Shown piece by piece: positions 28,201-64,000 of a stretch of 64,000 bases of DNA (position 1 is its first letter; each line of letters starts with the position of its first letter). Source of the DNA: Amphiscolops sp. MND2022 (lineage: Eukaryota); the NCBI GenBank assembly GCA_964187785.1, contig OZ076421.1:54436001-54500000 (forward strand). Reading direction: 5' to 3'. The translations under genes were made by a program, and so were the position numbers. Below the pieces are notes generated by a model. The model made no database searches, had not been told where the DNA came from, and was given only the letters and a program-made list of their open reading frames with translations.

Positions 28201-28300
28201 CCTGTCAGATACGATTAGCATCCCGGGTTACCAAGGATCCCGCCACGTCTTCTGAAGGCAGAGAGTACGGCAGCGTACGGATGCTGCCTTAGACGTGGAA
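25258..28300 (-). pseudogene. Decayed accessory ORF region of the large Gypsy element (unknown function; possible SGNH-like segment at ~27300-27860)
   Basis: Collinear ORF pieces 27854-27510, 27534-27265, 27210-26503, 26561-26232, 26204-25911 and 25956-25258 in GC-rich sequence. No signal peptide, furin site or clear TM anchor seen, so not called env. Confidence 0.55.
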
Positions 28301-28506
28301 GTGGTGCGAGATGAAAACGAGGCTGCCGTGCGGACTTGGTGCGTATGTTTCCAGCACCTCGCTCATTGATAGCCGTGGGTCAAGAACGCCCGTATAGCAC
28401 ACATTGGGAGGCTCTGGAATTACGACCGACCTCGGTATATTGTGGTTTTGGCGCCAATCAGGTGGAGGGCGACTGGTTCGAGTGTCATTGGCACTCATAG
28501 CTCCAA

Positions 28507-29523: not shown

Positions 29524-29825
29524 TTATTAAACGCATTCTATTCCGTGAAATGCCAGCTACAAAAGACTGCGAGCTCCTTAAAGGAGCTCGTTACATACAT
29601 GCAGTAAATGCTACTATACGTAAGAAATGCTTTAAAGTAGTGCATAGGGCATCATTAACTATTATCTACCTGTGAAACGGTAAAGAAAAAAGAAGCGCTT
29701 ACGGCACTTCGGTAAAAAAACAACAAAACGAAAGTGTGTGAAAGTATGGTTAACAGAAAGGTTAATGCCAATATTGCATTAGGGCATGCAGCAAAAAGTG
29801 CTGGGGCATTTTCATTGGTGGTTTA

Positions 29826-30534
29826 CTTCCCCACCTCGATACCCAATATTGATACATACAGGCGACTATGTAAAACTACAATGATAATTTTATCTGCAAA
29901 AAGATCCATCATGACCTGGTACAGGTTGGCCAGCGAAGGAACTGGTCGTTCAGGGTCCCGTGCCAGAAAGTGAATGTTTGACGCTCCTCTGTCGCCAAGC
30001 CATTGTTTTAATTTTACCAGACAGAGAAAAAGTCATCTGCCATCAGCGGCTCACGCTGATTGGCTCGTACGATACTCAAGTGGGCAAATTGGGAGGGTTT
30101 GTTGGTTATGGAGGAGGTCAGAGTTAAGACCTCTCTGTTGGCCGTAAGGAGAAGGGTTGCTCCCTTCCACACTCGCGCAGCACATAGTGCAACGCAACAG
30201 AATTTGTTTCCAAATCGGCCGGGTAGGCCAATGCAATGTCGCCCTTGGCCTGCAGGAAATCAGTCATGTCATAGGAGATGTATTCCACCAGATTGGGACG
30301 TAGGATACACGATCTTTAGCCCAGGTCCGTTGTCAGGGACATACATATGCGCGGAATGCGACCTTGCACCGCGGCCAAATCCTCCAACACGGAACGCGTT
30401 AGCGCCTGGTTATCCACATTTGCCCGGACCCATGTCTTCAATGTGCTCAACGCTGCCTTAATAGGCAACGGTTCCTCAAAGCTATGTATCCATTCGTCCA
30501 GCAAGCAGATCTGCGGGTAAATGACGAAACACAT
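29826..30534 (-). pseudogene. Frameshifted macrodomain-like (Poa1p/OARD1-type) accessory ORF
   Basis: Joining frames across one stop and two frameshifts gives ISYDMTDFLQAKGDIALAYPADLETNSVALHYVLRECG..GEVLTL..HLSIVRANQREPLMADDFFLCLVKLKQWLGDRGASNIHF..LANLYQVMMDLFADKIIIVVLH. The spacing of elements follows the Poa1p-like macro fold as I recall it. Confidence 0.5.
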
Positions 30535-30650
30535 GATGATTAGTTCTAGTCACCAACGGAACTTCACCTTACCCCGATACCATTCGATGAGGTGGAAACA
30601 GAATTAAACATTTCGTAGTGGAAGTCCTCAGACTTTCCATGCAGAGAAGT

Positions 30651-30761
30651 AGGTGTTTTGGGTTTACCAGCGTCTCAACGCGTGGCGCGGTCACTTGCAA
30701 CCACCCAGGTGTTTTGGGTTTACCAGCGTCTCAACGCGTGGCGCGGTCACTTGCAACCACC
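30651..30761. repeat. Perfect 56-bp-period tandem duplication
   Basis: aggtgttttgggtttaccagcgtctcaacgcgtggcgcggtcacttgcaaccacc occurs at 30651 and 30707. Confidence 0.95.
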
Positions 30762-31149
30762 AGTACGGGACTGGACTATAGACGCCTCCCGGCTAAACCT
30801 CTGCCCCATATCGGCCAAGCAGCAGATCAGCAGTTTAACATCGAGCCATTTGCACCGGCTCTCTGTCAACCTTGAACGGGCCGAACACAATGTTGAGAGG
30901 AACAGGATGGACTACCGTTGCCAGTGTGAACTCTAGGCGTTTGCCATTGTTCGTCCACTCCTTGAATCGAGTAAATGTTGCCTTTGCTACTCCAGGCACT
31001 GCAATTTGCTTCAAGATTATCTCGACTGAAATGTTGTCCGTTCGTTCTGCTCCAGAGGAGGTTTTTTGCTGATCGCACTATGGTACAACGAACTGAATCA
31101 TCAGCTTGTTGTCCTTCCCGGGGGACTCCCCGTGCTCCAATGAGAACCC

Positions 31150-34100
31150 CCTGATTCTCTTTCATTTCAGCCAGTATACAGACGCATTCGCGCAGCCCAC
31201 ACGTTCCGCATTTATATCGTGACTGGCGCTTTTGCCTCAACTGGTACCGGTCGTGAGACCCTGTCTGAATCTTCGTCCTTTCAGGCGGAGTCACTCTCCT
31301 TGCTGATGTTTTGAAAAAAAGGAGCGGTTGGGAGCTTAGGAGCCGATTGGGGATGACCATCCAGTAAATGATGCAGGACGAGCAACTGAAACATCCGATT
31401 CCTCGGCCTGGTGCGGCCAAATTGGATAGTTGCTGGGATAAGTGAAGGATTTGTTAATAAAGGGGCAGATGTCCCAAGCAGAGATTGCGCTGGTGTGTTG
31501 TCCGACGCTGACAGTTGTGTTGATGGAGAGCGCGGTCCCATGGTCAGAAAAAATCTGCAGGAGACAGTCCTGAAACGATATGTCCGAGACCGCGTCCTGA
31601 GCCTCATGCTCAGGGGTAGGTTCAGGGGACACCTCAGGTTGGGCTAAGTCCTGTGGATAAGTAGGAATGGGGAGCATGACAAATTCGTGTGGCAACTCAT
31701 GACTGCGTGGCAATTTCGGGGTAGAAGTTTGTAAGCGGTATCGCTGTTTCTGTACCACGGTCAACATGTAGGGAAAGAACCCTGTGATGGCATGTCGTGT
31801 GAAATTGTACGCACCGAGCACTTTACCAAGATGTTAATCCCAGTCACGTATTCGACGTCAACAATATACTCGCAGTAAAGTGTGTAGTGTGCAATTCTGT
31901 CGCCCCACCAGTCCCTGGGTGCGCGGGTGACCAGCCGTAGAGGTCACTTTGGTGACCTGGGAGGCCTTCAAGTTGGGAACCTTGTCGGAGTGCTTGCGCG
32001 TAAGTGTGCCATGGCGGGCAAACCACTTTTGCCCGAGCAAGGGCGATGTGGTAATCGCGTCGTACCCAATATGACTGCGAAGTACTGCCTCACCAAATTT
32101 GGAAAAATGGTCAATAATGACCAGGATTCCGGTGTTGCCATTGTTCGAATGGCAGATCTGCATATGGTTATACTGGAAAGCTCATTGAAATACCATACTT
32201 TGGATATTCTTGAGGCAAAAACGAACGTCGCCGGGTTTGTCCCGCACCTGTTGACATGCGAGACACTGGCTGACGTATTCCCCGACACTGCGGCGAATAC
32301 CAGGCCACATATGTCACTCCTGGAGGCGCGCCCATAGCATCATGCGCACTGAACAGTATTTCATTCTGATACAACTGGGGCATTAAGATCATGCAGTGTC
32401 GTTCATGTAACAACCGTTGCAAAGGGTTTACTTCGCACGAAGGACCCCATTTGAGTTGATAAATAGTAGATACTTTTTCGCTTCTGAAAAGAAGTCATGA
32501 TCGATGTTTTCGTGTTGGACCAGTTTCTTGAGGGCCAAAACGTGGATATCACGGATTTTGGCTATTACCAAGTCTTTGATCCCATGGATTGTGTGAGCAT
32601 GTTCGTGGAGATCAGTGCTCAGGTCTTGAATTACCAACACAGCCTGCTTGATGTTGGTAGTACGCGAAGCGACGTTGGTGACATGCGTTGGTAATAAATT
32701 GTCCAATACTCCAGTCTTCAGGATAATCAGGATAGAAATCCTCGTGGGCGTGCAAGACATGTGGAAGAGGCGCCGGCAATGGAGCACGGAGAGCCTCCTT
32801 TTGTTTTCCCGTCTCTTGATTCGTTGGGTACGAAGAACAATGCGCAGTACCGCACTGGGAGGAGCGGGCTGCACATGATGCAGGTGTGGAGGTAGGTCGG
32901 GGTGATTGGGCATCACCTGAACCTGCACGTCGAACCATGGTGCAATGGGCGAATGCTCGTACTCATCTTGAGACAAGATGTTCCATCGTTCGGCAACGGG
33001 CGGCAGCTTCTCGAGTTGTTGCTTCCGCCAACGATAATCATTGGTGCGCATTTGATAGGCCATCGATATTAGGATAATGCATTTGCGGGCAATGATCGAC
33101 ACTGAAATGCTACTTTTCAAGGGCCATTATCCAACGACCAATAAAAGCTTGATCGGTGGAATAGGTTTTCAACCACGACATTGCCTGGTTGTCCTCCCTC
33201 AGGGTGAACTTCCGTGGGCACAAGACGCTGTGCATTCTTAGCAATGAAGTGATAGGGGGCGTACATCTCCAGCTTAGGAGCTCCGTACTTTGCGTGTGTT
33301 GCAGTTAGTTTCATGCTGTTGTAAATAATGGGGAGGAGACGTCGATTTCCTGGAGGACCTTACCACTGGTGCAAGATACCAGAAATCGCCACAGCACTGG
33401 CTTCAGTGTCCAATACAAATTCACCTTCTGAGTCAGTCTGCGCGAGGGCAGTCGCCTCGATCAAACCGTTTTTTGATCTCGTTGAAGGCCTGGTTTAGTT
33501 CAGGTCCGCACGCGAAGGTGGCTCTCACTCCAGTGATAGTGTGCAAAGTTGGCACTAGTTTGGTGTCCCCGGTAGTAGTTCGCGAAGTCCAAAAAACTTT
33601 GCATTTTTGTCTTGTTGCGGGGAATTTCCTATTCCCGTAATTTTGCAACTGCCGGGTACCGTTGATACCACGCGGCCCAAATACTTAATTTCCGTCTTTA
33701 TGGAGTCACACTTTGCTACTCGCATCTCGAATTTGCTACTTATCGCAGGGACGCAAAGACCTCGCGGAGGCGTACCATGTGGTCCCCCACGGTTTCGGTG
33801 GCGATCACGATGTCGCCAATGTATGCGTCTCCATTCATGCGTCTCCAAGAGCATGCGTCTCTATTCAAGGAGTCCCAATTCGCCGGCACAAGCAGTTGTT
33901 TGGCGGTCAACCTTTCGGACTGGGATCTGCCAGAAAGCCCAGGCTAGATCGATGCTGGTTTAGATCTTGGCTTTGCCTAGCCTGTTAAAGCTCTCATCGA
34001 TCCTAGGCAGCGGGTACGTTTCTTTGACGGTTACCTCGTTCAGTGGACGGAAGTCAGAGCAAAACCGTTTCTCCCTGTTCTTCGTTCAGACCATGGCGAT

Positions 34101-35290
34101 CCCGCTGAACAAGGGGGGCAGCAAAGGCTGAATCATTCCGAGGGCGAGCAGGTTGCGCACTTCCTTGTTGCCACAATCGGCCTTCTCAGGAGGCATCCGC
34201 GTCACACCCTCACGATGTGGCACGGCGCCTGGCTCCATCTCTAACGGGTGTTTTACGATGGTGCAACTGCCGATGTCAGCCTTATGCTTCATGAACAAGT
34301 CATCGAACTCACCCAATATGTTTTCTAAGGATGTACTCAATTCAGAGCCCCACAGGACTTTACATCTTGTAGCTGGGTTTCTGGCACTGGTTCAGGAGCC
34401 AGATGCTCAGTGTCTGTGCGTTTCTTCTTCTCACGGTCCGAAAGACCTTCCTCAGTAGGATCTGTTGAAGACAAAAACTCAAATTCAGACGAAGAAGTAA
34501 ATTGGGATCTGTGTTTTCGTATACTTTAGAAACAAAATCAACACGGTCTTTATCGACTTCAGTTTTGAGTTCCAAGTCATCCAGCTGCTGGGACATCCCT
34601 GTACATTAGAGATGCGGGTACCACAGTGCCCAGGTGGGTGTCTCCAAGGACGCGTTGTAGGATACTAGTCAAGTTCATTACGCTGACAACGACGTGGCCT
34701 GGCTCACTGACAGTGACAACTCAGTCCTCTAAAAACACAACGTTTTGTTGCGACGCATCCAAAACAGCCGCGTTTAACCCCTAATTTTGAAAAACCTTTG
34801 ATTCAACGTCCGTAGTGACCGACTGTGCTTTTTCAACCGCAAGCTCAAATGGTTGCAATACTAAGTCGTGGTCTAAGGCGACGGGAACTGCTAGAGTGGG
34901 ATCAACTACCTGAGTATGGGCATGATGCCAGACTGGTTGTACTGTTGCGCGAACTACAATCTTCAAGTTGCAGCCTAATACGAAGTCATCGACTCCCATT
35001 GCGTCGTCCACAACCAAGAAGTTCGTTTCCAGTTCATAATCTCTCAGAGCTCACTCTCCGCCATCCCGAAGGTGTTAATGGTCTTGCCGTTAGTGCCATA
35101 CAAGTCGATCTGGTAGGGTTTCAATACTGCCCCCGTTTGAACAGCGACACGGCTGAAGGCGGCGAACGTCAAGATTGATACTGTAGACCCCGTGTCATCC
35201 AAGCCTCTCAGTGGATTTCCTTCGCGACTATTGTTGTAGCATTTGAGTTTCTGGGGACCCAAGCAGGTACCATCCAGGTGGGAACACAAC
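31150..35290 (-). pseudogene. pol: Decayed Gypsy pol (PR-RT-RNaseH-IN)
   Basis: Protease LDDTGSTVSIL (~35170-35200); RT RFCSDFRPLNEVTVKETYPLPRID and IDLAWAFWQIP, with YxDD degraded to YIGD (~33820); RNase H YGAPKLEMYA; integrase ILFSAHDAMG, GILVIIDHFSKF and TAGHPRTQGLVGR. Confidence 0.93.
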
Positions 35291-35633
35291 TACGACCACA
35301 CAGGCCTCAAACTTCACTTTCACGCCATCCATGGTGTCGCAGATCGACACGAGAGAATATGTGGTCAACGTGTCTGAATCTCCCGGAGCGTACTACTCTT
35401 TGGGTCGGGTGAGCTCCGCTCGTTTATACAATATCGCCAATTCAGCCCAAAGCTTTGCTAATGTCAGCGTTTGGCGACGCTGCTGTTCTGCAACTAACAT
35501 CAGATGAAAAACTGGATGAGGGTATGACCTTGAGGGTTGAACGTTGTCGGCTATAAACACGTTTGCACTTGTTTGGCACCGCAGGTACTAGTTAGGGGAG
35601 TATATAAGGCAAGTGTTTCCGCTGCGTGCAGCA

Positions 35634-37400
35634 TCAGTACACGATCATCTTCCAGTGGTACTGTGTGGGTAGCAACACCAACAGCTTCCACTTCCACCCA
35701 TCGGCTGTAAGCAAAGTCACTGTGACGCAACGTGGTCTACCATGCCAAAGTTGACACAGAAGCGGATCCCTGGGGCAATTCTCCGCGATACACTCGACAA
35801 CGTCCTCGGCAGTGGTCTTCACAGCCTCAGGCTCCAGCAGTACTGCTGGTTTGCGGGACTGGTCACTAGTGGAAGAGTCACGAGCAATGTGATCTGTTTG
35901 TTCACAGTTGAAGCAGGTACCTAGCAGTATGCGCACGGCAGGTGGTGCAGCCGCAGTGTCGGCTGGTGGATTGCTCGGAGGAAGTGGTGACAACAATCCT
36001 TGCGGAAACACCATCTTGTTGCGTTGCAATGGTAGGAAGGGATGAATCCTCGTCGTCATGGTATAGCGGAGATCATAGGGTTGTGATTGCTTTGGACGAT
36101 TTCGTTGTAACGGCCTAGTGGTGAACCTCAGGGACGCCACAGTGGTTCGGGCATGCACGGTGGTTTCAGATGCATAAATAATGAATTATTGGACAGCTCC
36201 CGTCGAAGAGCTGCGTCTCGGACACCAATGAAGCGTTGCAGGATCTCATAACATTTAGTGGAGATGGGCTCTTCAGGAAATCCCCGACTACGCAGCTCTT
36301 CCAAGGAATCCAAATATTGCATCCAGTCTTCCTTTTCTAGCTGATATCGATAAGCGAAGTTTTAAACGCACCTGTATGCAATTATTACTTCCGGTGCCGA
36401 ACTGACTGGCTAGCAGTTCGGATACCTTCTCAGGCGTGTCCCGTTCGGACTCGGCCTTGTTGATGATATAGTTGCGATCTGCGCCCTCCAGGTGGCCGTT
36501 GATGCTCCAGGATTTGTCATCCGGAGTTGCTTTGCCCTGCAAACGTTGTAGATAACGGCAGATGACCAAGATCCAGTCGTCAATGGAGCCCTCTTTGGAT
36601 CCACGATAGACACTGGGCCCTGCTTGTGACGGATCACGGCCGGCCAGCAAGGGAGCCAGCTCCTTCGACATTGCTTTGGATAGCGCAGAGTTGGATACGC
36701 TTTATACGGCCGATACGCCGAGGACCGTCGCGAGGATGCAACGGATGTGGCACCAACGCGCATGGAAGGATTGTTATCGCCAACCAGTTCGTCTTGCATG
36801 CACAATGTTGTCGGTCGTACCTTTTGGTGTTTCCCAGAAGCCTTAGTTCGACTGGCTTCCAGGCGATTTTTGGCGTAGTTCATCACGCCCACAAACGTCA
36901 TACTTTCTAAGATCGCATCAGTGTCTTTGCTGCCGGGGCTGCTAGCATCGGCGGGTGCCCTCGAGCACCCTCCTTCACAAAGCGTCGCATTGATGGCAGT
37001 GATAATGGAATTGGGCCAAACCCCACTGTGCGGGAGACATCGTCAACCCACATCGGGTGTCTTGGATCGATTGTTTAGTCCGGATCAACTCTTCCGAAAC
37101 CGTTGATGTGTTCCGAGAAGGAGCCATGTCATATTAGCAGACGTTGTTTTGTCAGACATTCCTTCTGAAAGGGAGGGATTGGTCAGTAGGGACTTCACCG
37201 ATGGCCACTCCCGTAAGCTCAGGTTACTATCACTTCCCGAGCTGTCGTGTTGTACCGAGCTCAACTCAAGTGTTTCACCAGTTTCGGTCATATCGGACGT
37301 GTTGCACCCGTGCAACTCTAAATTCGCCGTTGAGTCACGCGTGAGCAACTTGGCTATGGCTACTGCGGCTGCCCAAAACATTGCGCGGCAGTTTGCTGTA
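35634..37400 (-). pseudogene. gag: Decayed Gypsy gag
   Basis: PSVYRGSKEGSIDDWILV..RNYIINKAESERDTPEKV, MQYLDSLEELRSRGFPEE, and the zinc-knuckle remnant CFNCEQTDHIARD. Confidence 0.85.
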
Positions 37401-39059
37401 CGGGTACGTGCGTGTTTGGCAAACAGAGATCAGTACTGAGAGTACTGACAAGTTCAATTCAGCACTCGGCCGTCGCTTCAGTGGTCAATTAGTCAACGAT
37501 CTGTCGATCAGGGTTCGCTAGTGCGTCTTGGGAGACTAGAGACGACTGGCAGTACCTCCGGGCACCTCCGGGGACCTCCGGGAACAATTCGGTAAGAAAT
37601 TGAGCCAAAAACTCAATATGCACGTCTCAAAAGGGCCGAAATCACTTGTAGGGGTCTTAGCGAGTTCAAATTCACTCACGCAGTTGTTACCAACCCACAA
37701 ACCCAAAAAATGAGCCTATTTTGGAGCTACACTTTCTCTGAGACAAACACAAGGCGTTTTCAACAAATTCTGAATTTTCTCGAGGAGTACAAAAAAAACA
37801 AAAGTTACGGCTCGTGTTTGTCACTCAAGGGTCGGATCCGGCTCAAAATTGACCAGGGCATCCCACACTTACGTAGGTACACGGAATTGAGCACCGATTT
37901 GGGCTCCGAGGCTCGTACACTGTTTCACCTTGGTAAAAACGTGCGGTACACCTCTGCGTCAGTAGGGGTCAAATTGTACTCTCATCGTACAATTTCCAAG
38001 CACCGGATAAAGCTAGCGGTTTGATTTTTTCGCTATCCACGCACCAACCAGAACATATTAAAAATACGATAGTGGGCAGCAATTTATTCTAACTTTTCAT
38101 TGAAGGTGTTCAGGCACTTCCAAAAAGTTTCCTTTTCGCATCTCTTTTTGTGCAGTACGTTTTCATCAATTTCTCAGCCTTTTTCCACTTTTCACACTTT
38201 TCCACCAGAAAAATCACGTTTTTCTACCTAAAAGTGTTGCGGGAATGATCAACACTGATTTTTGCCGACTTTCTCAGGGATCGAAGCTACTTTTGCCTCA
38301 CTTTTTGCAAAGCAATGTTGGACTTACGGAGCACTCGTGCTCCAACCAAAGAAAAACATGAAAAAACACAAACAAGCGCTAAAAAATTTGCTTTCTTTGT
38401 TCAAAACGTTCCATAGCAAAGAATGTCACTGACCTCCACCAACGATTCCCCAATAAAAAGGTGCAAATTCAAACGCGAACCATGACCATCTGAGCGAGGC
38501 TCCTGCCTTTCTCCACGCCCAGACCAGCTGGAGACATGCCGTTTAGACCATTAGCACCGGCCGTACTTGCACTCGCTGTCCAACAAAAGTCGCCTCTCTT
38601 GGACGTCTCCTCGAAAAACAGGAAACAACGAACCGCAACACTCCATCTCGCCCCACCGTCGCATGGGTGAAGTATGGTTTTCCATTCACCCACGGCCATC
38701 TTGCATGGCTCAAAAAGCTGAAAATAGCTGCAAATACCTGTTAAACACCGGCAGCGACGTACTACGGTCACAACTACCTGCAAATAACATAACCGCTGAT
38801 GGGTAAACTCACAACAAAATCACAAAACATGCATTTACTGGTTTTTCCCCTGAAAACGCATGGCATTATCACACCTGAAAACCGGCTTTTTTACGGGTTT
38901 TTCTGAGTCTATTTCGTTCCAGTTCGCAAGAATACGTACAGTCGCTTGAAAGGGAAGCAAAACTCTGGCTCTCTCCCGCCAAGAGTCAAAACTGTCTTGG
39001 CGCTCGACACCGGTGGGCCAGATCTTTCAAAAACCATGCAGGAAAGCTTCCCAAGACGA

Positions 39060-51156: not shown

Positions 51157-51316
51157 ATGGCCCAACGTAATGATATCCCAGAAGGAGATTTGGAATTTTA
51201 CAAAGAGCTGAATGAGTTCGAGATACGATTGCCCGGTAATGTACGGGCAACTTTCTCTTGTGATGGAACTTGGCTACAAATGGCAAAACAACGGTATCCG
51301 AAATGGAGAGACCAGG
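51157..51316 (+). CDS. Exon 1 of the NERD-helicase gene
   Basis: ATG at 51157 gives MAQRNDIPEG...MAKQRYPKWRDQ. The GT donor at 51317 is phase 1, compatible with the acceptor at 53449. Confidence 0.5.
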
Positions 51317-52099
51317 GTTGAAAAATATGTTTCAACCTAAGAACAATTGACCGAATCTTGGTCCAAATCCTAGTCGAGCAGTTTTTTGGCAAAAAATAGA
51401 GCAAAATTATTGTGGAATCATTTTCGAAACCAATTTGTTTTCAATTTTAGAATTTTTTTCAGGCTTTGATTTTTTCACTTGAGAGTTCAAGCAAATCAAA
51501 TTGTCAAAGAAACTAGACAAAATTAACAAGAGTGTAATTCAAGTTATGGACCATAATTGGGTTTCCATGAATTTTGGATGACTCTTTTTCTCAATGAAAT
51601 CAAATTTTAACATGACGGAAATAAGGTAAAAAGTTACCCATGTTTTCGGTCTTTGCAAATTTTGGCGAGAACCTTGAAGATATGTGCAGATTCGGAAAAA
51701 ATGACCAACTCAGAAACACAATAAAAACCTCACAGGGATGTTAAACGAATAATGAAAATGTAGGATTTGAAGATTGTAAAAATTAGCCAAAAGCAACAAA
51801 AACGAGTTGCGGCGAGCCCTCGTAAGGACCATAGTTGACGTTCATCAAATAAATGTCAAAAGCACGGCAAGCCTGGCTCAAGCAGAACACAGAAGGAACC
51901 CACAGCTTCTTAAAATAGTTTGATATATCTCGGGTGTACTAGAGCTCGGATGTTTAGAGTAAGTCAAAAGCTCATTTCAAACTAAGAACAACTTTGGGCA
52001 AATGAAACAAAATGTTTAATTCACGAGTTCGCCTTCCTCAACAAAGCCTTAGAAGTGTCTTCGCAGGACGAGCCTCCTCACTGACATCGTCGTGTAAAT

Positions 52100-52660
52100 G
52101 ATTAGAGGTTGTAAAAAAGTTGGAACTCTTGACAGACCCATGTTCTCGTTCGACGTTTGCAGGGCTCGTTGATGCTCTGCAAAAAGCTTGTAATCGTCTG
52201 TTGCAGGTCACGCAGGGTGTTGTCCGCGCATCTTTTGGCCAGCACTGTCAAGAACGACGTCGCACTGGTTGCGAATCTGCTGCTTGTTTCTATGTCTAGG
52301 GGTATAAAGTCAATTCCGCTTTGTTTGCAAGGCTCAGCTGATGCGGCGAACATTCGCTCTCCAACCAAATTCACGTAAATCCTCTATCTTTCACCGCCCT
52401 GTTATTGACGGATACTGCAATATACGGATATAGTTAGGGTAACGTATAGAGTTTCGGTTTGGGTCTCGCTCAGATGTGGTAGTTATTATAGAAGGGCAGT
52501 CATTGTCAGTGTTTTTTTCTACAGGAACTGCTCCAGCGACCCAGGAGAGCCAATGTGCGAACCCATTAGTCAACCCCTCCTGTAGGGAGCGATCAATGTT
52601 TCCGGGGAAGTCTGACAAGTTGGTGTCGGTAGGCCAGAACAGTTTGCATTTCCAAATTTT
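52100..52660 (-). mobile_element. Fragment resembling the C-terminus of an RLE-type (CRE-like) non-LTR retrotransposon, in intron 1
   Basis: GIDFIPLDIETSSRFATSATSFLTVLAKRCAD..ITSFLQ resembles the FxPlaxEtxG..a..fL..la.r tail of CRE-like elements. Confidence 0.4.
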
Positions 52661-53164
52661 CACTTCGAGCCCAGACTGTATTCATTCAGAAAATGAATTA
52701 TCACACGCTTTCAGTTAATCCGTTCCAACCAATGAAGATACCGTCGTCTAAGTACCCAATGTGTATCGAGAGCGAGCACGATGCATTGATGTGCGCAACG
52801 AGTGTGTTTAGGGGTAACGCAAGACGCAGTGGAACAAGAGGATCACTTTGTAAAACGCTTCACTTCTTAATTGTGAAACCGTGAAATTAGTCGAATAGGC
52901 TTTCGTCGCCATAATCGTACACCACCAAAACGTATTTGCTGGGAAAGTTAACTTTAACCTCGTTTGCGCATGTTTACCTGTCTACCAAATCCAATGCATT
53001 CATTCATTATTATCTATGACTCGAGAACTCGATCCAAAAATCCATGATCGTGGATGGTATTGCACGAGCAATTCATGACAGACTATCTGAAAAATCTGAC
53101 TTTTCAAAAACGGGTCGAATTGGTTCGATCATGATTATATTCCAGATCTTCAACCAAAAATGTG

Positions 53165-53240
53165 ACGCATCAGCACAGGTTCGAACCCATGACCTCGTGT
53201 CTGCATGGCAGACCCACTACCAACTGCGCTACGGTGTCCC
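53165..53240 (-). mobile_element. tRNA-derived SINE or tRNA pseudogene
   Basis: A box TAGCGCAGTTGG and B box GGTTCGAACC at tRNA spacing, but the T-stem and acceptor stem do not pair. Confidence 0.6.
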
Positions 53241-53449
53241 GACTATCGAAACAAATTAGTATTTACTAAATGGAGTAATAAAGTGGAGAATTGGCAGAAT
53301 TTGGAAAAAACGTAACACAGATTATGATTTTTCGCCCCCATTAAATGTGGGCGTAAAATGATATTGACAGACAGCCAAGAAATACTTTCTTCTATTGTGA
53401 TTTTCGTCCCCAATAATTCAACCCTGCGAACCAGGCCGAGTGACGTCAG

Positions 53450-53688
53450 TTCCAGTGTCAAGAGTCCCGAAGCTGTTCATAGACAGCGAGCAAATGCATG
53501 AAGACCTAAAGAAAGAAGTCAAACTTACCACAAAAGGGGAAGAAGCCGAGCAGTTGCTGTACCAGTTATTTATAAAAAACTCTGGTTCAAAAATGCATTC
53601 CTTACAAAAGTATTCAAAATTTTTTGTTTTTGCTCTTCCGAAAATATCGTTGAAATCATTGGAGAAATAACTGGCGAGAACGTTCAAG
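53450..53688 (+). CDS. Exon 2 of the NERD-helicase gene (contains a -1 frameshift in a T run)
   Basis: VPVSRVPKLFIDSEQ..TKGEEAEQLLYQLF, then in a shifted frame CSSENIVEIIGEITGENVQ|G. Strong donor AAG|GTATAG, phase 1, matching the acceptor at 54839. Confidence 0.7.
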
Positions 53689-54269
53689 GTATAGTTTTTT
53701 TGAGAGGACACTTGAAAACTTTAACACAAAATTTCAAACCTTCAGCAGTTGAGAAAGTTTTTTTCAAATGCCTTTTAGCAATTTTCTGGTTATCACAACA
53801 AAATCATAGAACTACAAAATTGACGTCTGATGAAAAAGTCATGATTTCCATGGTGATATAACAAACCCTGCATAAGATTTTTTCATTTTTTAAATACTAG
53901 TGCTTCCGAACACTAGCCGAACTTTTTACCAGCAAAAACTTGGAAAAAATGGACTGCTTGTTCGTTTGTCAAATTATTTACTTAACTTGTTAGGAACAAA
54001 AACCATTTCTTTACTTTTTCACGAAACTCTTACTTGGGTTTTTTGGAATTAGAACCTCAAGTATTATCTTTAAATGCCCGTACCGTTGAAAAAAGCAGGA
54101 ACGACATTAGCTAGATTACTGAGAAGCCAAGGATTAGAATTTTTGGACGCTTTATAACCTTGAATCGCAAATAACTTGTTTTTTTTTTCATTTCGTTTTT
54201 TTTTCGCTGGGAACTTGATATTGTTAGGATCCCAAATGAAACGATCTCCATTTGGAATGATTTTGAAGA

Positions 54270-54670
54270 CCAAGATCTTTAACTGTTAGGATCGTCAATT
54301 ACCAAAAAGTTGAATTGAGATTAGGAATAAAAAAGCATTTGAATTGTCAAGATTTTGAACTGCCATTTTTCTGAGCAACGGGATCTTGAACTGCCAGGAT
54401 GTCCATTTGAGATGATCTTGAATAGCTAGTGTCTCAAATCAAAAGGATCTCGAATAACAAGGCTTTCTAACACTGCATTGTCAGGATCTTAGAACGACAG
54501 GCTTTAGAACTGTCATGATATCGAATTCAGAGCTTTTAGATTGACTAGAATTTTTAAAATGACAGGAGTTCGAATTGAAAAGATTACGCGTTTTCAGGAT
54601 CTCCAATAGACGGTATCTTGGGTTGAGAAGAGCTTGAATTGGCAGGATCTCAAGTTGGGAAGACCATGCA
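54270..54670. repeat. Degenerate ~20-bp minisatellite in intron 2
   Basis: Recurrent aggatct(t/c)gaa..g..aggat-like units. Confidence 0.55.
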
Positions 54671-54839
54671 AGTTCAGGATTTCGAAATGGAAGTCTCTTG
54701 AATTGTCACGTTTTTGAGAAGTGAGGGTTGTTTGAGAATCCAATCAATATCTGCGTGAATTTTTTTATAATGTCTGAGAGCATTGCAAGTGTTTGTAAAA
54801 GTGATGTAATTTGAGAAGAAATGCATTTTTGGTTGACAG

Positions 54840-55594
54840 GAGAACCGTTCAAAGTTAAAGATCAACCTGGAGTAATGATTTTCCCAAACTTTGATGGTTC
54901 TCACATCTTCAAATCTCAAGTTGCCCATGTTGAAATTGACATGATTCTTATTCATCCCACGAAAGGAGTTTTTGTTTTCAACGTGAAAAACAAAGGTAGC
55001 TCCAGAAAATGTACCAAGGAGAAACAATGTGTCAGAGACGATATCGAAAAGCATACAAAGTTCATTCGCTTGCTTATAAACTACACTTCGGAAGTTGCTG
55101 ATACTAATCTTCCAATACACTCAGTAATTTGTGATTTCGCGAGCGAAAAATCCATACATGCTGATTTGGAGAAGAAAAAAGTCCTGGTTCTTCGGAAGAA
55201 TGATCTCACAAAAACGAATTTTGTCAAATCATGGTGCTCTAAACTAGCCGACGTTGAGTGCAAAGCGAATGCCAAGGACGTCGACTTGCTTGCTGCTCGA
55301 TTGATAGCTCTTGCTTCGATCGAAGGAGCGGCAGTTTTGATAAGCGACAAACTGAAAAGAGGCCTACTTCAATCTGTCTCTAATTTGGAACGATTAGAAA
55401 CCCAGTTGAAACCATACGATGCAAAGGATTTCATAGCAAAAATTTCTGAACTCTCCAAAACTGAAAAATCGCAAAACAATGCTGATGAAGTGGAGTTTTT
55501 CTGTGGAGTAAAGACCAGCTGGAAGTTATTGGGAGAATTTATGCTCACCTAACAAAACAATTGAGAGGAGGAGGCGCACGAATTTTAGTCAAAG
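54840..55594 (+). CDS. Exon 3: NERD-like PD-(D/E)xK domain and linker up to the Walker A strand
   Basis: VEIDMILIHPTKGVFVFNVKN. After a -1 shift at T5 (55496-55500) it reads FLWSKDQLEVIGRIYAHLTKQLRGGGARILVK. Confidence 0.8.
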
Positions 55595-55664
55595 GCAGGG
55601 TTTCCTAGAATTTTATTAAAAATTACTCTTCAATACATGGTTCGACGTTTTTGAAAGTTGATAG

Positions 55665-58600
55665 TTTATTTCGTTAGATGGTAAATCAAATACAAGAATT
55701 GTATTATAGAAAGTACAGCATCTAACCAGGACAAAAAATGAGCATTATTGCTCTTTAAAATTTTTGCCCTTGAAAGCCACAATCATAGAATAAAATGCCT
55801 GAGTTTATTGGGAGAACTCAGTAAAACATATCAAATAGTCCCTTCCCGTCAAGGATATAATTAGTTCTTATTTTATCCAGGTGCATTTTAACTTGTTGTT
55901 TGCTGTACCTCTTGATGTCTTCCGGTATCAAACTCATCAACTTCAGCCAGTTATAAGCCTTTGTTAAGACATTTTTTAGGCTTCTCTCTTTCAGAACAGT
56001 TCTCTTTGAAAGAGCTGGTAGCAGCACTTTTCTGTTTCTAGTAGTGTTGTAATCGTGATGGTTGCAGTTAAACTTCAAAAATTCATTCGGCGATTCTCCA
56101 CGTATTTGTTTAAAGACTTCAATGAAGACTTCATGAATGAACATTTCATACACATTGCTTAAGCAATTAGTACTATAAATTTGAGACAATGAGTCATATT
56201 TTGTTTGAAATAAATAGCTCTCAGAATTCTTCTTTGGGCAGAATCAATGCTTCTTAAGGTGGTCTTCAATGCCCTTCCGTATATTATCAGTCCATACCGT
56301 ATCACAGACTCTGCAAAAGCTTTATAAAACATAAGGAGATGCTTTTTTATATATAAATCGCGCACTAATAAAAAATTATAAATTATTCTGCTAAACATGC
56401 TCAAGTTTTTTTGTAACGTAACCGATGTGATATTTAAAGGTTAAATTTTCATCAACATAGACACCCAAACATTTGCAATGGGGTTTTCGTTCTGTTTTTT
56501 CTCCCAAAAGAGGTAATTCATAGCCAAAACTACGTCCGAAAGTCATAAATTCACATTTAGTTATATTAACTGATAAGGAATTTATTTGAAACCACGTGGA
56601 TAAGGATTCTATGTCATTATCTAATTGACGCTCACAATTGTGACCTGCATTCAAAATTGTAGTATCATCTGCGTATATCGCAACTTTGCTAGTATCACAT
56701 TGTTTCGGAAGGTCATTTATATACACAAGAAATAGGAAAGGACCCATGATGAAACCTTGAGGAACACCAAACTTGATTTGAAGTTTGCTTGACTTATATT
56801 TTTCACTTGAACAAATTGGAAACGATTCTTCAAATATACTTACAAAATTTTCAAAATAGGTCCTCTGAAGCCACAATCCGCAGGTTTTTGAAGGAGAATT
56901 CTATGATCTATTGAGTCGAAGGCCTTTTGGAAGTCGATAAATCAAGACACTCCGCTTTCCTTCTGATCAATTTTGTCCCGTATGATTTCAGTGATAATTT
57001 TAATTGCATTGCAGCACGAACGTTTTTTCCTGAAACCATATTGATGTTCAGAGAAGGAGTCGTTTTTAGAGAAAAATTTAGTCATTTGTTTCAGCAAAAT
57101 TGATTCAAAGATTTTCGAGATTGGGCTCAGAAGACTTATAGGCCTGTAATTCTCAGGTTTGGTGTTATCGGCTTTTTTGTACATAGCAATTACTTTAGAA
57201 ATTTTCAGGGAGTTAGGAAATTGTCGTTCAAGAATACAATTATTGAAAGCTTCGCATAAATACTTTTCTATAAAAGGTGAACAGCACTTAAGTATTTCGT
57301 TACTAATACCATCATGACCTGTGCTTTTCTTGTTTCCCAGATTATTAAGTATTTTTCCAATTTCAACTTCATCTGTTTGTTTCAAGACCATTGTTTTTTC
57401 ACTTTTCTTAACTGAAGATTGATTTGAGTCTCTTTGAATATTTCCAGCTATTTTTTCGCCAACTGTTGAGAAAAAAGAATTAGGTTCGTCGGCTGCTAAA
57501 CTAACCGCTGGGTTATTATGAGTTTTTAGGGTTCGATAGACTGCCTTTGACGATGGATTTTCGCCCAGTTTTTTGAAGTTCGCTTCCCGTTTAGCTTCTC
57601 TGATCATCGATGTTACTTTATTTCTGAATTTTTTGTGTTTTACCCGCGTTTGATCGCTTGGATTCTTTACCCAATTTTGAAATAATTCATCTCGTTTCGA
57701 GATGGCATTTTTCAATTTGTTAGTGATCCAATCTGCACTATTCTTTGGTTTGGGATGTGTTTGGAGTGGTGCGAACCGGTTAACTGTCGACATAATATTT
57801 TCACCAATAAGTACCGATTGCTCATCCGCTTTCCTGTTATAGTCTATTCCTTTAAGTTTTTGATCTGGCAAAAATAAAAAGTTCAGGGTATTAGGATCTT
57901 TACTTTTTTTTAGATTTCGAGATTCGAGATGGGCACAGATTCGAAGGGATGATAGTTTTCGATGTCTTCAATTGAATCGTTCTCACTGAGCCAGGTTTCG
58001 GTGATCAGTATTAGTGCTGGGTCAGCATGTAGCGTTTTTAACAAAAGGATAAGTTCACCGTGATGGTATCTTAAAGATCTTATATTCAATCCCAAGAAGA
58101 AGGATTTCTCCCTTGCTATCAAAAATGTTTTTGTGGCTTTCAACTTTTGAACGTATTTATTGAGAAAAAAACTGAGAGGTTGGTGTTTCAGTTTCTTTGG
58201 ACACAGCAGGAGGCAAGCATAGGCAACATCAATCATTCGAAGAGCAATGAGTATCTCTAATTGCGGAGCTGAGTGAGCTGTATAAGTTTCCACAGTAGGC
58301 TGAATCTGTGACTGATTTCGAAAATTGTATACTTCTTTCATCAGAAGACTCTCGGAGGCATTTGAGAAAATCTGGCCAATCTGTTTTGTCCACTTTGCTA
58401 GCCTTCATCTTCCGTCCTCCCGTTTGAGAACTTATCTGTTGCACGTTGTTGAAACTACTTACCTGGCTGGTTGCTTTTTTGACCGCTTTGTATTGAAGAT
58501 CATCCACGCTTTTGAAACTAATTACGCCTACTGATTGTGCAATACCATTCGGTCCATATCGAAACACTCTCACCTGAGAATTCGAAGTTGTTGTCACTAA

Positions 58601-59340
58601 AACTTTTCCATCAGCAAAGTTTTTGATATCATTGTCTGTTTTTGATAGATATTCTTTTATCAGAATAGGTTTGTTGTTGAATTTGTTAGGGTTTCTCGCT
58701 AGCCATGCCTTTCTTTTGAAAACCTCCATTTTGTCATCAAAGTACACGAACTTAACGATTACTGCAGGTGGATAATTGTTTGACTTCCAAGGCGATAGAA
58801 AATGACAAGCTTTGAAGTTAGCTGGCTCTGTTTTGAAGTCCAGGAAACAGGCCAAAAAAGAACACATTTGATCTTCTAAGCGACAATTTTTGTCATTTAT
58901 CAGAGGAAAATTTTCAAAAATCAGAGAATCTTTCGAACTGTACCTTTCTTAAACTGCACACGACTTTCCAAGGAGCAAACACGTTCTTCCAATTCTTCTA
59001 TTTTTTGTCCTTCTCAGTTAAGTTTTTTACTAACTGACGAAGTAGCTGCTTGATAATGCCGTCGTAAAGCTGTTGAATCTGCTGATGTAAGTCGGTAAGA
59101 GTCTCCATTATTAACCAATTTGATAAACGGAATAGTTCGTTAACGGTAAGAATTTTGTTGATATTACGTAATGTTTCACATGCATTAATTTTTTGCTTGC
59201 TCTCACTGCTTGAATTCGATGCTTATCCAGCGCGCATCACAAACCGACCGTTTGTCAACAAAGCGTTTCTTCGTCGTTTTTCTAATCCTCCGAACTTCAG
59301 GCGATAGTAGCCCAGTCGAAACCTTTTGATCACATTTGAC
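55665..59340 (-). mobile_element. Near full-length LINE (CR1/L2/Jockey-like), antisense in intron 3
   Basis: ORF1 with coiled coil and FKACHFL..VIVKF (59100-58229); APE start LNIRSL..LITETWL; RT KSTGHDGI, NYRPISLLSPISKIFE, QYGFRK, GVPQG, YINDLP, YADD. Has frameshifts and a truncated endonuclease. Confidence 0.93.
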
Positions 59341-59411
59341 AAATAGATGTTTTAATCCGTTTCTTCATTTTAACTTTTCAATATTCACTTTCTATTGAAC
59401 CCTGATTACAG

Positions 59412-59651
59412 GTGGTAAAGGCACAGGAAAAACGATGTTACTAGTTTTCCTCGCCAAAATGGCACATATACTGCTGGAATCGAAACAAGAAGAAACCGAA
59501 ATATGTCCAGACGAGTCAGAACCGAATGAAGAAAAGAAAAACAAGAAAACGGCAGTTTTAGTGTGCAACGCTGATGTCACTTGTCGGAATTTTACAGCTG
59601 CTCTCCGAGATGCTCTAGAGTGCTTTGACGTCACTGTGGAGGATTTGAAAC
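59412..59651 (+). CDS. Exon 4: Walker A (GGKGTGKT) of an SF1-like NTPase
   Basis: Acceptor attacag|gt ggt aaa ggc aca gga aaa acg; donor c|gttagc at 59652. Confidence 0.8.
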
Positions 59652-60487
59652 GTTAGCCTACTGCACTAATTACCTTGAGCTAAATTCATCTCATTCAATC
59701 AACAGGGATGTCGTTTCTTAAAAACCTAACTGCAAAAAAATACATCACAAAATTCCAAAATTCGAAAGTTTTTGGCTAATTAAATACTTTCTAAAATCTT
59801 ATCAATATTCACAAAACGATGTTTTGTTGTTTTAACACTTGCGCACAAAAATTTGGATTAAAAACAGAAACCTGACATTTTCTGGTTCATTTTAAGCTTT
59901 TCCACGTTTACCTCCATGAAGATTTCTCTCTACAAAAGGTATGTAGCTACTTTTCGATTTGCTGTCGAACTCTCTGAATACTCATGCACATGGACACACT
60001 CAATAAGGATACACGAATTGCATGAAGCGTTCAAAAACTGGAAACGTTGACACTTTTTGCTTACTTAAAGCAATTTTTGAGAGAAATTTTTCAGACAATC
60101 AAATTAGATATGTAATGGTGCGTTTTGTACTTGAACTCTCTGGATACATACATCTACCAGAAAAACAACCAAAAAGTATACACAAAATGCATGGGAGGTC
60201 TCGGGTTTCCCTTCCATACAAAGACTTCAGAAACAATCTGCCCAATAATTACAGTATCATTTGAGGCTAATTTTAGTCCGCTGACATGGAACGGTATGAT
60301 TTTAACAGATTTGGCTGTGGTTACAAACTTCCTGTTGACTGGACCAAATAAGGTTCGGTCTTGCTCCATGGTTGGTCTAGCTTCATGAAGAACAAGTTTG
60401 CTTTGCGGAGTCAATCAATTGAAACAAGATGCCCGCTAAGCACCGGGATATTTTCCTCCCTTTTCGCCTTCATCACTTGAGCCATAG

Positions 60488-60737
60488 CTATTTTGGGAGG
60501 GGAATAGGATCTAAATAATAAGATCTAAAATTTAGTGATTTTAGATCTTATTCCCTTTAGATCTTATTCCCGTCCTGAAATTTTAGATCTTATTCCCTTT
60601 GGATCTTAATCCCATTTTTTCTTTAGATCTTATTCCCATGAGATTTTATACTCGTCCTGAAATTTTAGATCTTGTTCCCTTTGGATCTTATTCCCTTTTT
60701 TCACTTTAGATCTTATTCCCCCCTCCTACTAAAATAG
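60488..60737. repeat. Fold-back/MITE-like element with internal TTTAGATCTTATTCCC repeats
   Basis: About 9 copies of the agatcttattccc motif. The ends ctatttt..ggaggggaataggatctaaa and tttagatcttattcccccctcc..aaaatag are inverted. Confidence 0.75.
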
Positions 60738-61476
60738 TCAAGTAACTAAATAGTCAAGTGATGGAGCGTGGAGATTTGGCAGAATTTGCAAAAAAAAACG
60801 CAACACAGATGATGATTTTCCTCCCCATTGAAAATGCGGGTCGGAAAATACCAATGATGGAACTATTGAGTATATTTGAGCATTTGAGTACGTTTTTTCT
60901 TAACTGGTGAAAAGAATGGCTGTTTTTTTTACTTTTTCAATCATGAGTGATTCCATTGAAGCTCAAGTATTCCCAAAAGGTATGGACTGCTGCAATTAAC
61001 TATTGAAAACAAAAATAGTGGCTGTATGCTTTTCGCTTTAAATATTCGAAAACCGTACATAAATTGCAAATACTCTTGGTATTTTGAGGAAAAAACTTGT
61101 TTCAAATAGAAAGATGATAATCCCCACAGATAATTACGCCACAAAATTATTGGTAGTGTAGATTTACAGACCAATTGCTGTTTTTAATATACAAAAATTG
61201 GCAAATTTGAGCAAAAGCCATCCATAAACTCTGCCGATGGACCCCACTTAAGTCTCAAATAGTTCTTTCTTTTGAATATGATCAAGAGAGTTTTCAAATT
61301 TCAAAGAAAGTCCTGAAAATCCATCTCTGCCAAATATTCAACTTGGCCCCTTTTGATACAAAAATGGCCTTTCTTTATTGAAAACATATAAAAAAAGGTT
61401 TCTTTGATGAAATGAAAAACAAACCTCTAAGATTCTCATGGTGCCAAAAAAAGAAAATTTTGCTTTATTAATATAG

Positions 61477-61973
61477 CTAATAACCTCCAAGAGCAGTTGA
61501 GAAGCTTCAAGATGATACTATGCGACGAAGCCAAGGACCGAATAAATCGAATTTTGCTAGAAAACGTGAGAAAAGAGCAACATTTGGTTCTGTTCACCGC
61601 AGAAAAGAAAAGAAACGTGGACCCACGGTTTGAACAGTTCCTTCTCAGAAGTTGCCTCCGATCAACTTCCCAGTTGGCATGGGTCTCAAACACTTACCAT
61701 GCGAGACAGTTGAAACATGTCTCAGTACATACGGCCTCTCCATCCAAGACTTTTCACGGTGAATATCCAGACGTGAGATGGGCCGACGAATCCTGTCCAG
61801 CTGAAAAGTCAAATGGAAATGACTTCATGCGAAAAAGCGTCGAAGCAATTCGTGAACTTGCTGCTGAACCCGGACTTGATTTTGTTGTGGTGCCCTTGAT
61901 ACGAAAAGATCTTCTTCAGAAAATAGTTGACGACCTGAGTAGAGATCATCTATGTAACGTCGACGAAGACTTG
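61477..61973 (+). CDS. Exon 5: Walker B (ILCDE) and LRSCLRST motif
   Basis: Acceptor aatatag|ct is phase-compatible with exon 4. The 497-nt exon ends phase 0 at TTG|GTTGAG; this donor is less certain. Confidence 0.75.
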
Positions 61974-62349
61974 GTTGAGAAAAAGACTTTTCTTGTCAAA
62001 ATCTTTCTGAATTACCCCTTGCAAAGTAACGTACTTTCCATAGAATTTTTTTCAATTTTTGAAAGTTTTTTCTCATTGTGGAATTCTTTCATCTATCATA
62101 TATTTGCTGGAATAGGCATTTTTAGTCGGCGTTTTCGAAGAAAATCCCGACTCTTACAGTGGCTAGTTTTTTTTCGTCAGTTCAACGCGATCGGTCCACT
62201 TTTTTGATCATTTTTTCATCATCAACTTTAACTACGGACCTCCAAAACATACTCGAAACGCCAGACCTCGTCTAAAACAAAAACATCGACGTCCAGAAGT
62301 CCAGAACCTCGATAACATAGGATCTCTCCTTTTGGTGTTTTTCACTCGG

Positions 62350-62670
62350 ATTTTTTTTTGGCACTATGCGACTTTTTTAAAAGCTTTTTGGATTCCACCA
62401 AAGGGTCCCACCTTCATTTTTTTTATATTTTGCAACACAATGGATGTCAAAAAATCCCAAAGGATCCCCCCTATTACATTTTTCGGCACTGTGACACTGT
62501 TTTAAAATCTCAATTTCAAATTTTTTCGAATTTTTTTGATGTCTCCAAAGGGTCCTCCCTTTAATTTTGATATTTTGCAACCACCTGGAGTTTCACAAAG
62601 CCTAAAGGGTCCCCCCTTTTACAATTTTGAGCCTTAGATATAGCGCCAACTTTGGCCGTTACCGGCTTGT
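62350..62670 (-). repeat. GGGGACCCTTT interspersed repeat family, copy 3 (intron 5)
   Basis: aaagggtcccc motifs, reverse complement of the 43.8-kb and 46.2-kb copies. Confidence 0.8.
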
Positions 62671-62885
62671 TTGTCTTTGCTACATGGGATGAAAGCTATA
62701 GTTTTTGGAATACTTGCATGCAAATGATGGTAGGTTTGACTGGTGACTAGAGATTGACGTTACACGGGAACACTTGCTCTCTTGATAACATTCTAACATC
62801 GAAGAACATCCCGGAGAATGTTTTAAGAATGAGGAGCTTGGAAGTTCTTTAGAGTTAGTATTTTTCTCAAACATTTCTCAACCAG

Positions 62886-64000
62886 GGAACGCTGCATCTC
62901 AAGAGTGGCGTCGAAGTTGAAAAACGAAAACGAAATCAAACCAAAATCAACTTTTTCCATCCTCGCACAATCGAAGGTTTCGAATTTTCAAAAGTTCTAA
63001 TTTTGCTCGAGAACAACAGCAAGAGTTTCTTCCAATTTACAGACAGTGATTTCTTCACTGCTTGTACAAGAGCCTGTCTCAAGCTGCTGGTCGTAACTGA
63101 TGCATGCACTGAGCAAAATGAAGTCTGGTGGCAAGATATCTACCGAGATTTTCTAAGAAGTGAGGTGGACAAACTTTTAACTGAAATTTCATCCGATGAA
63201 AAAACTCCATTTGTGATGTTTGTTGGACAAATGGAACATTTGCTTGAATCTTTGAAATTCTGCAGAACGGAACAAGGACCTGAATACTTAAGTTTCCCAT
63301 CGACCGTTTACGAAAAAGATGGGCGAAGATTTTTCCATTCTGATGACGTATATCTGGAATCAGATTTGGCAGAAATGTCAGAAAAGGGGGTCAAAAGAAT
63401 ATTATTCATGGATGACAACATTACCAATTTATGGCAACACTACTTCACAGCTCTTTCACGTTGGTTCTGTTTCGACTTCAGCCGTCGGCATGCGAACTGT
63501 TTTCAGGTCGAGGATTGGTTGGAGATTGTTCATGAATTGAACTTCCAGATGAAATTCCGTAGAGCTTTTCTTCGGCGAATTTCAGGCCACGCCGATGTCA
63601 CGTTTCCTCGTTTCTGGCTCAAGTTGGAGATGAATTCTTTGCCTTCTCCTGTATTAATTGGTTGGGAAAAGTGGATAATGAAAGCGGAAAAATGCCATGA
63701 AAAAGGATACATTACACAAGCTATTTTCATTTATGAGTGTGGAATGAAAACTTTACAACAGCAAATCACGTCTAATGGACCACAAAGCTCTCTTCGGAAG
63801 AAACTCGCTGATTTATCACGTTTTGTTTCCGAAGTTTATATCAAAAGTATAAAAATTATTGTCGAAGAAAGCAAATGTTCGTACTGGGTCCCAACCACCC
63901 AATATGAAGTATGTTTGCTGAAAGCTTTCAGACATGCTGCGAATGCCCTCAAATGGCATGCCTCTGATGCCAATTCCAAGTTTCAACTACTTGAACGAAT
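62886..64000 (+). CDS. Exon 6: helicase motifs V/VI (UvrD_C_2-like) and helical TPR-like tail; runs off the window
   Basis: Open frame of about 371 codons to the window end, absent from the ORF track because it has no stop. TIEGFEFSKVLIL (62967), FFTACTRACLKLLVV (~63051), WEKWIMKAEKCHEKGYITQAIFIYECG (~63660). Confidence 0.85.

Follow-up and report, generated by a model that had tools for sequence, protein, structure and literature searches.

In bacteria, single-chain NERD-helicases carry an N-terminal NERD domain of the PD-(D/E)xK type followed by a Superfamily 1 (SF1) helicase motor, the named forms being NERD + UvrD_C_2, NERD + DUF2075/SLFN-g3_helicase, the DRT-associated 'RTasNERD-Hel' and the PADLOC 'NERD+UvrD'. 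A proven single-protein anti-phage nuclease-helicase is Nhi (Staphylococcus nuclease-helicase immunity), which combines PD-(D/E)xK with DUF2075 (10.1101/776245) and serves as a working model for the helicase-coupled breakdown of foreign nucleic acid; Hachiman is a nuclease-helicase pair (PMC12278908). We have analyzed a stretch of 64,000 nucleotides from Amphiscolops sp. MND2022 (hereafter the window; C13:54436001-54500000 of a 1.07-Gb genome), in which a gene on the + strand, at 51157-64517, presents the same domain order. Our preferred reading, to which we assign a probability of about 0.6, is that of a six-exon, acoel-type gene for a protein of approximately 1146 amino acids (aa), comprising a NERD domain, a helical linker, a compact SF1 helicase, an alpha/beta domain and a helical tail of about 300 aa, which we propose to be a helicase-coupled nuclease on account of its analogy to Nhi and Hachiman.

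The bacterial NERD-helicases are the nearest Atlas clusters to this protein (TM by query 0.39-0.49; language-model features 0.93-0.94), and PADLOC models give weak matches both to paralogues of the gene (RTasNERD-Hel, 27.6 bits; NERD+UvrD, 12-17 bits) and to its exon 3 ('Helicase', 16.8 bits). In contrast to these proteins, the window gene is animal and intron-bearing, has NVK in the place of ExK and contains a linker of about 110 aa, while its alpha/beta domain and 300-aa helical tail have no counterpart in the bacterial NERD-helicases. As in Nhi, one polypeptide would unite an N-terminal PD-(D/E)xK nuclease and an SF1 helicase, but the motor of Nhi is DUF2075 (SF1B-like) and Nhi lacks a C-terminal repeat region; the Nhi profile (PADLOC PDLC02372) has no match on the window exons at E<=1, and its 16.3-bit match to a paralogue (L008) is confined to the Walker A region. 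In vertebrates, nuclease-helicase fusions occur in a different form, the Schlafens. With the long (group III) Schlafens (SLFN11, SLFN5, SLFN14) the likeness lies in layout only: the Schlafen nuclease has a different fold, the Schlafen core, and Schlafens have no comparable helical tail. Avs/STAND proteins and SAMD9 share with the window gene the logic of an effector nuclease, an NTPase and a helical/TPR-like C-terminus, but here the NTPase is an SF1 helicase and not a STAND ATPase.

Gene model, transcription and alleles

The gene consists of six + strand exons in mutually consistent phases, bounded by AG acceptors and GT donors with the sole exception of a GC donor after 55594, which is backed by a spliced contig and kept in a neighbouring copy on C13. 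The exon pieces of the window align end to end, without gaps, with single-exon paralogues. We have placed Logan contigs of four public runs (X1-X4) on 53448-59447. X1, X2 and X4 are three runs of one sample, cover introns and behave like DNA, whereas X3, from a second sample, has exon-only coverage with joints and behaves like RNA. Clearly, the gene is real, spliced and transcribed, transcription being judged from the spliced contigs. Exons 2 and 3 are joined by X3 at 53583>54839 (GT..AG, cut +1), and exons 3 and 4 at 55592>59410 (shiftable by up to 3), equivalent to 55594|59412, which confirms the GC-AG intron 55595-59411. Junctions 1-2, 4-5 and 5-6 are drawn solely from canonical sites and from colinearity with paralogues and with P0042, an open reading frame (ORF) of an ENA contig in which exons 5 and 6 are fused and to which exon 5 is 56% identical. 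The resulting features are as follows.

51157..51316, + strand: exon 1, start ATG, MAQRND..., ending in phase 1
53435..53584, + strand: exon 2, GRVTSVPVSRVPKLF...KGEEAEQLLYQLFIKNS-G, with the first NERD acidic motif GEEAE at 53536-53550
54840..55594, + strand: exon 3, NERD core, helical linker and helicase start (LWSKDQ, 55501-55518), with a GC donor
~55489..55500, + strand: 7-nt deletion of the reference haplotype (frameshift), from contig comparison
55550..55552, + strand: premature TAA stop in the reference allele, which leaves only the NERD part, a product of 340 aa
59412..59651, + strand: exon 4, Walker A G-GKGTGKT (59414-59434) and an acidic insert, aligned with the Walker A motifs of paralogues
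61477..61973, + strand: exon 5, ILCDEA, LRST and the first half of helicase domain 2A
62886..64517, + strand, beyond the window end at 64000: exon 6, motif V, motif VI, alpha/beta domain and helical tail
63207..63596, + strand: predicted family-specific alpha/beta domain (VMFVG...DDVYLESDL...), from the AlphaFold 2 (AF2) secondary structure of the 49%-identical P0042
63663 to ~64478, + strand: predicted all-helical tail, including a TPR-like motif at 63663-63767

A previous reading made from the letters of the window (the sequence-only reading) had proposed six spliced exons encoding about 1000 codons, and its exon count and phase consistency hold. Its exon 2, placed at 53450-53688, has to be redrawn: given the X3 joint at 53583>54839, the exon ends at 53584 with the donor G|GTTCAA, 104 nt before the proposed end, so that the appended 104 nt are intron and the frameshift that an added T was to repair there does not exist. 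In a C1 paralogue a stop codon immediately follows the matching ...SG|GTTGA site, and paralogues that hold exons 1-4 as one open frame pass from LYxLF...G directly to ...QPGxxVFPNFDGS. Colinearity with the paralogues also places the exon 2 acceptor probably at 53435, as the AG at 53433-34 adds GRVTS in phase and fits the paralogue consensus G(K/E)xTS(V/I)P. Exon 1 is colinear with the single-exon paralogues, and its MA... start is conserved in the C1 paralogue, which has stops upstream of it; since the spliced X3 contig reaches about 660 nt 5' of exon 2, a long 5' untranslated region or an additional 5' exon is possible. At the other end, exon 6 is a 543-codon open frame closed by a TGA stop at 64515-64517, which takes the in-frame coding sequence to 3441 nt and 1146 codons rather than the proposed 1000. 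Among the junctions, transcript-type contigs bear out 2-3, with its redrawn donor, and 3-4.

Comparison of the contigs evidences two forms of exon 3. At the deletion site the X1 and X2 contigs match the window without gaps, while an X4 contig from the same sample has 459 nt over 452 nt of the window and a spliced X3 contig has 729 nt over 722 nt, the excess lying around 55489-55492 in both; the 7 extra bases bring exon 3 back into frame, and the coding sequence of the reference allele measures 3434 nt. The paralogues are longer and in frame at this site, and therefore the deletion would be the derived state. We take the reference haplotype to be the 7-nt deletion allele and assign the in-frame allele to another run of the same sample and, for the second sample, to the spliced contig, an assignment that shares the probability given to the gene and its mechanism as a whole.

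A second spliced X3 contig at 55592-59414 is about ten times as deep and has the same exon borders, but four letters (TGGG) differ where the exons meet; the simplest interpretation is a transcript of a more highly expressed C1-type paralogue (ILVNG|GKG). Intron 3 also contains a degraded non-LTR (long terminal repeat) retrotransposon on the - strand (window 55818-58867), antisense to the gene, with its reverse transcriptase spread over several ORFs (RVT_1, E 1e-15 and 2e-8); its contig depth in the DNA runs is 10-40x that of the flanking unique sequence, which indicates a high-copy family. Outside the gene, the window has a block of about 50% G+C at 24000-38000, the remainder being at 35-40% G+C.

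Domains of the predicted protein

Domain searches and fold predictions were carried out on separate exons and on single-exon paralogues in place of the full spliced protein. The NERD motifs GEEAE (53536-53550), VEIDM (54929-54943) and FNVK (54977-54988) lie in exons 2 and 3, and exon 3 alone, without the exon 2 part of the domain, matches Pfam NERD (PF08378) with 26.0 bits against a cut-off of 22.1; NERD is matched in 13 of the 19 alignment rows scanned (best E 4.7e-7). We have folded the single-exon N-terminal ORF of a paralogue (L009; 420 aa, about 45% identical to the window, pLDDT 74), and the model has a restriction-endonuclease-like alpha-beta-beta-beta-alpha-beta core with GDEAE on helix 1, EID on strand 2 and NVK on strand 3. 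As judged from this model, the N-terminal domain is of the NERD-type PD-(D/E)xK fold and a putative nuclease. Of the catalytic set, GEEAE and EID are present; the third motif reads NVK both in the window and in all paralogues inspected, Asn standing where ExK has Glu. Between the NERD domain and the helicase lies a helical linker of about 110 aa.

The helicase motifs GKGTGKT (59414-59434), ILCDEA (61515-61532), LRST (61653-61673), TIEGFEF (motif V, 62967-62987) and TACTRA (motif VI, 63051-63074) follow each other such that Walker A, the DE of motif II and the Arg of motif VI (TRA) are all present in the order expected for Superfamily 1. In an exon-wise scan, which has reduced power, the Pfam helicase families stay below their gathering scores (Viral_helicase1 16.4 against 21, AAA_11 13.4 against 27), and a search of the PDB with the family sequence profile returned one TPR-like motif only and no helicase. 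The predicted structures are more informative in this respect. P0042 is 49% identical to the window in an almost gapless alignment, and over residues 1-400 its model (pLDDT 83.6, pTM 0.84) matches SF1 helicases and nothing else, with scores of 14.0 for UvrD, 14.0 for AdnB, 13.6 for Rep, 12.9 for Upf1, 12.8 for IGHMBP2, 12.1 for HelD and 10.2 for SLFN11. In agreement, the Atlas neighbours of the P0042 motor are UvrD_C and UvrD_C_2 clusters, and the N-terminal model, over its residues 300-420, resembles the first RecA lobe found in PcrA and in reverse gyrase. Two RecA-like domains of SF1 type are thus found in the predicted models, and the motor is clearly an SF1 helicase by its modelled fold; it is compact, leaving no room for 1B or 2B inserts.

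Motif VI is followed by a long helix, an alpha/beta domain of about 130 aa, a loop and some 280-300 aa of helices. The alpha/beta domain has the conserved motifs VLFVG and DDVYLESDL, and there is neither a Pfam match at E<=10 that recurs across members nor an Atlas look-alike by features. In the tail, a single unit is TPR-like by sequence (E 0.004), and the fold matches (MIT domains, the TPR of XAP2, consensus TPR proteins) lie within the background for helical proteins. For the C-terminal model, Foldseek ranked SAMD9 (E 4e-5) and the Avs5 filament highest; both were rejected as specific relatives, the resemblance to SAMD9 being generic because it is not in the top 50 upon realignment by Z.

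The architecture is therefore largely the one anticipated by the sequence-only reading, all of whose quoted motifs are present. It had described NERD, an SF1 helicase and a TPR-like tail: the nuclease and SF1 helicase folds are recovered, the former by Pfam and the L009 model and the latter by the P0042 model, and the tail is long and helical, but its TPR character comes down to one weak motif, and the alpha/beta domain between motor and tail had been overlooked. From the profiles it expected, NERD exceeds its Pfam cut-off, while UvrD_C_2 stays below (18.3 against 27.4, on a paralogue) and PF09848 has no match. Its parallel with Schlafens is retained for the layout and not for the nuclease: the Schlafen core was not found in the N-terminal domain, which is NERD/PD-(D/E)xK and whose model matches Schlafens with TM 0.26-0.29 and a root-mean-square deviation of 12-13, and the motor scores higher against UvrD and Upf1 than against SLFN11. 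Its proposal of a poorly described family is supported, and the genome search reported below shows the family to be expanded.

A tandem family and its relatives

A search of the genome returned no fewer than 32 matches to the NERD exon and no fewer than 41 to the tail exon. The family counts at least 30 loci, many of them arranged in tandem. Such clusters lie on C1 at 41.3-41.5 Mb (three copies), C11 at 6.8-7.25 Mb (two), C8 at about 11 Mb, C12 at 11.55-11.73 Mb and C13 at 54.49, 54.64-54.69 and 54.92 Mb. Protein identity between copies is 25-69%, intron positions are held in common while intron lengths differ, and several matches contain stops. The nearest paralogue, C13:54914000-54943999, lies 430 kb downstream and has exons 87-92% and introns 72-82% identical in nucleotides. 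No exon 1 was found in this copy, which has a TGA in the stretch matching the intronic sequence formerly added to exon 2, and frameshifts plus a 700-bp insertion in its last exon; where the window has the 7-nt deletion, exon 3 of this copy keeps an open, uninterrupted frame. Judged from these lesions, this neighbour is a pseudogene. A distant member at C7:14.26 Mb, on the - strand (L019 1483-4074), has its helicase domain 2A interrupted by a long, acidic stretch of low complexity (AEKV repeats), and just upstream on the same strand lies a tandem pair of NERD exons, one with HVD replacing NVK.

We have compared the selective regimes of the different domains by the ratio of nonsynonymous to synonymous substitution rates (dN/dS). 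Between the window and a C1 paralogue it is 0.29-0.41 in every exon, which suggests, as part of our reading and with its probability, that the family is under moderate purifying selection. Within a six-copy subfamily (pairwise NG86), the alpha/beta domain is the fastest part, with the highest values of the last exon (0.5-1.06), and the tail averages about 0.37; one comparison of the window and pseudogene tails was discarded as probably out of register. Across the wide family and at the same loci, the last exon is 24-34% identical compared to 39-50% for the NERD exon. In addition, dS differs about threefold between adjacent domains of one gene pair among the C1 and C11 copies (for C1a vs C1b, 0.16 in the tail and 0.45 in the alpha/beta domain), and such differences within the same pair suggest gene conversion or recombination between tandem copies.

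Outside this genome, where a length filter and a word index restrict the reach of the searches, phmmer with the last exon as query returned 39 matches among 1.84 billion representatives, all of them unnamed ENA ORFs, and in addition a spurious repeat protein (P0020). Profile searches gave 85 and 8 matches with one named and no full-length annotated protein. The sole named relative is an uncharacterized protein of the acoel Symsagittifera roscoffensis, 37% identical, which itself has no match at E<=1e-100 in this genome. By sequence, no orthologue is detectable beyond acoel-type genomes and no bacterial protein was reached. By shape and language-model features, the N-terminal module resembles bacterial NERD+UvrD_C_2, NERD+DUF2075 and NERD+ResIII proteins as well as clusters annotated 'hypothetical protein' from molluscs and cnidarians, and to a lesser degree Schlafen GTPase-like fragments; these look-alikes are to be taken as leads and not as proof. 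Our literature search found no paper on animal NERD-helicases.

Competing explanations and biological meaning

A number of points weigh against our reading of the gene as a helicase-coupled nuclease. The nuclease activity is uncertain because all family members inspected have Asn at the Glu position of ExK, and the identity of the helicase rests on motifs and on the predicted folds of paralogues and homologues, no Pfam family reaching its cut-off. X3 is termed RNA-like solely because its contigs skip introns. The reference allele is itself null, and the +7 contigs could derive from a near-identical copy absent from the assembly instead of from an allele. Finally, the tail averages about 0.37 by pairwise NG86, a value that does not point to positive selection.

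That the null state of the reference extends to the whole locus, making the window copy a young pseudogene, dead like the C13:54.92 Mb copy, with transcripts that are noise or come from another copy, would accord with the reproduction of the frameshift in contigs of two DNA runs, with the stop codon, frameshifts and 700-bp insertion of the nearest paralogue (87-92% in nucleotides) and with the gene birth and death evident from stops in several family matches. However, DNA from the sample of those two runs and a spliced contig both show the in-frame +7 form, the other exons are all open, including the 543-codon last one, with dN/dS of 0.3-0.4, and relative to the neighbour copy the exons are about 90% identical compared to 72-82% for the introns, and we consider this explanation unlikely. 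The frame breaks have also been read as assembly homopolymer errors in an intact reference gene. The break in exon 3 does adjoin a T5 run and one added base mends it, but with exon 2 closing at the donor that the spliced contig supports, the first break is gone; contigs of two runs are identical to the reference at the second, and the other form is longer by 7 nt rather than by 1, so that the cause in exon 3 is a 7-nt indel and not a missing T; an assembly error at both places is highly improbable.

Other explanations concern the function and nature of the family. The structural neighbours of the motor (UvrD, Rep, AdnB, Upf1, IGHMBP2, Dna2) belong to repair and RNA surveillance, which, along with purifying selection, would suit a housekeeping role in DNA/RNA metabolism (repair, replication fork or RNA decay; cf. 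Dna2, AddAB, Upf1) instead of defence. Such enzymes are normally single-copy and widely conserved, whereas here there are at least 30 divergent copies in tandem arrays, pseudogenes and a null allele among them; sequence searches reveal no orthologue beyond acoel-type genomes, and the tail is lineage-specific, all of which makes a housekeeping function rather improbable. A mobile or selfish element carrying a nuclease-helicase might be envisaged from the multiple copies, the combination of a nuclease with an SF1 helicase and introns rich in retroelements; the copies are, however, 25-69% identical in protein, share intron positions with differing intron lengths and lie in tandem clusters, and the retroelement of intron 3 is antisense and unrelated, which leaves very little likelihood for an element of this kind.

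Returning to the helicase-coupled nuclease, its ATP-driven motor would load on DNA or RNA that is foreign or aberrant, be it viral, transposon-derived or damaged, and would bring or license the N-terminal nuclease, as in single-chain bacterial nuclease-helicases such as Nhi, while the fast-diverging alpha/beta domain and the helical tail might set target or partner specificity or auto-inhibition. From these analogies we infer that a role in nucleic-acid defence, antiviral or anti-transposon, is plausible. The large tandem expansion, the dead neighbour copy and the segregating null allele fit such a role without proving it. We also count in its favour the faster C-terminal divergence across the wide family, the bacterial NERD+UvrD and NERD+DUF2075 look-alikes and the reported lack of canonical immune signalling in acoels, which likewise is no proof. 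A bolder view, which we regard as doubtful, is that the family consists of lineage-specific, stand-alone immune sensor-effectors in which an SF1 helicase, placed between the nuclease effector and a C-terminal sensor that diversifies, substitutes for the STAND/NLR switch; the family would have expanded in acoels and would have distant structural kin in molluscs and cnidarians, with an origin in bacterial NERD-helicase defence genes.

For annotation, the locus teaches that exon-by-exon ORF tracks and homopolymer 'repairs' can mislead, and for genetics the natural null and in-frame alleles offer a ready-made contrast. One study reports that the canonical pathways of immune signalling are missing in acoels, which respond via acoel-specific genes, and makes no mention of helicases or nucleases (PMC12849515). 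If our reading is true, this expanded, transcribed and polymorphic family is a concrete candidate for the 'acoel-specific' immunity postulated there, and would connect nucleic-acid defence in prokaryotes with that in animals in a way that can be tested.

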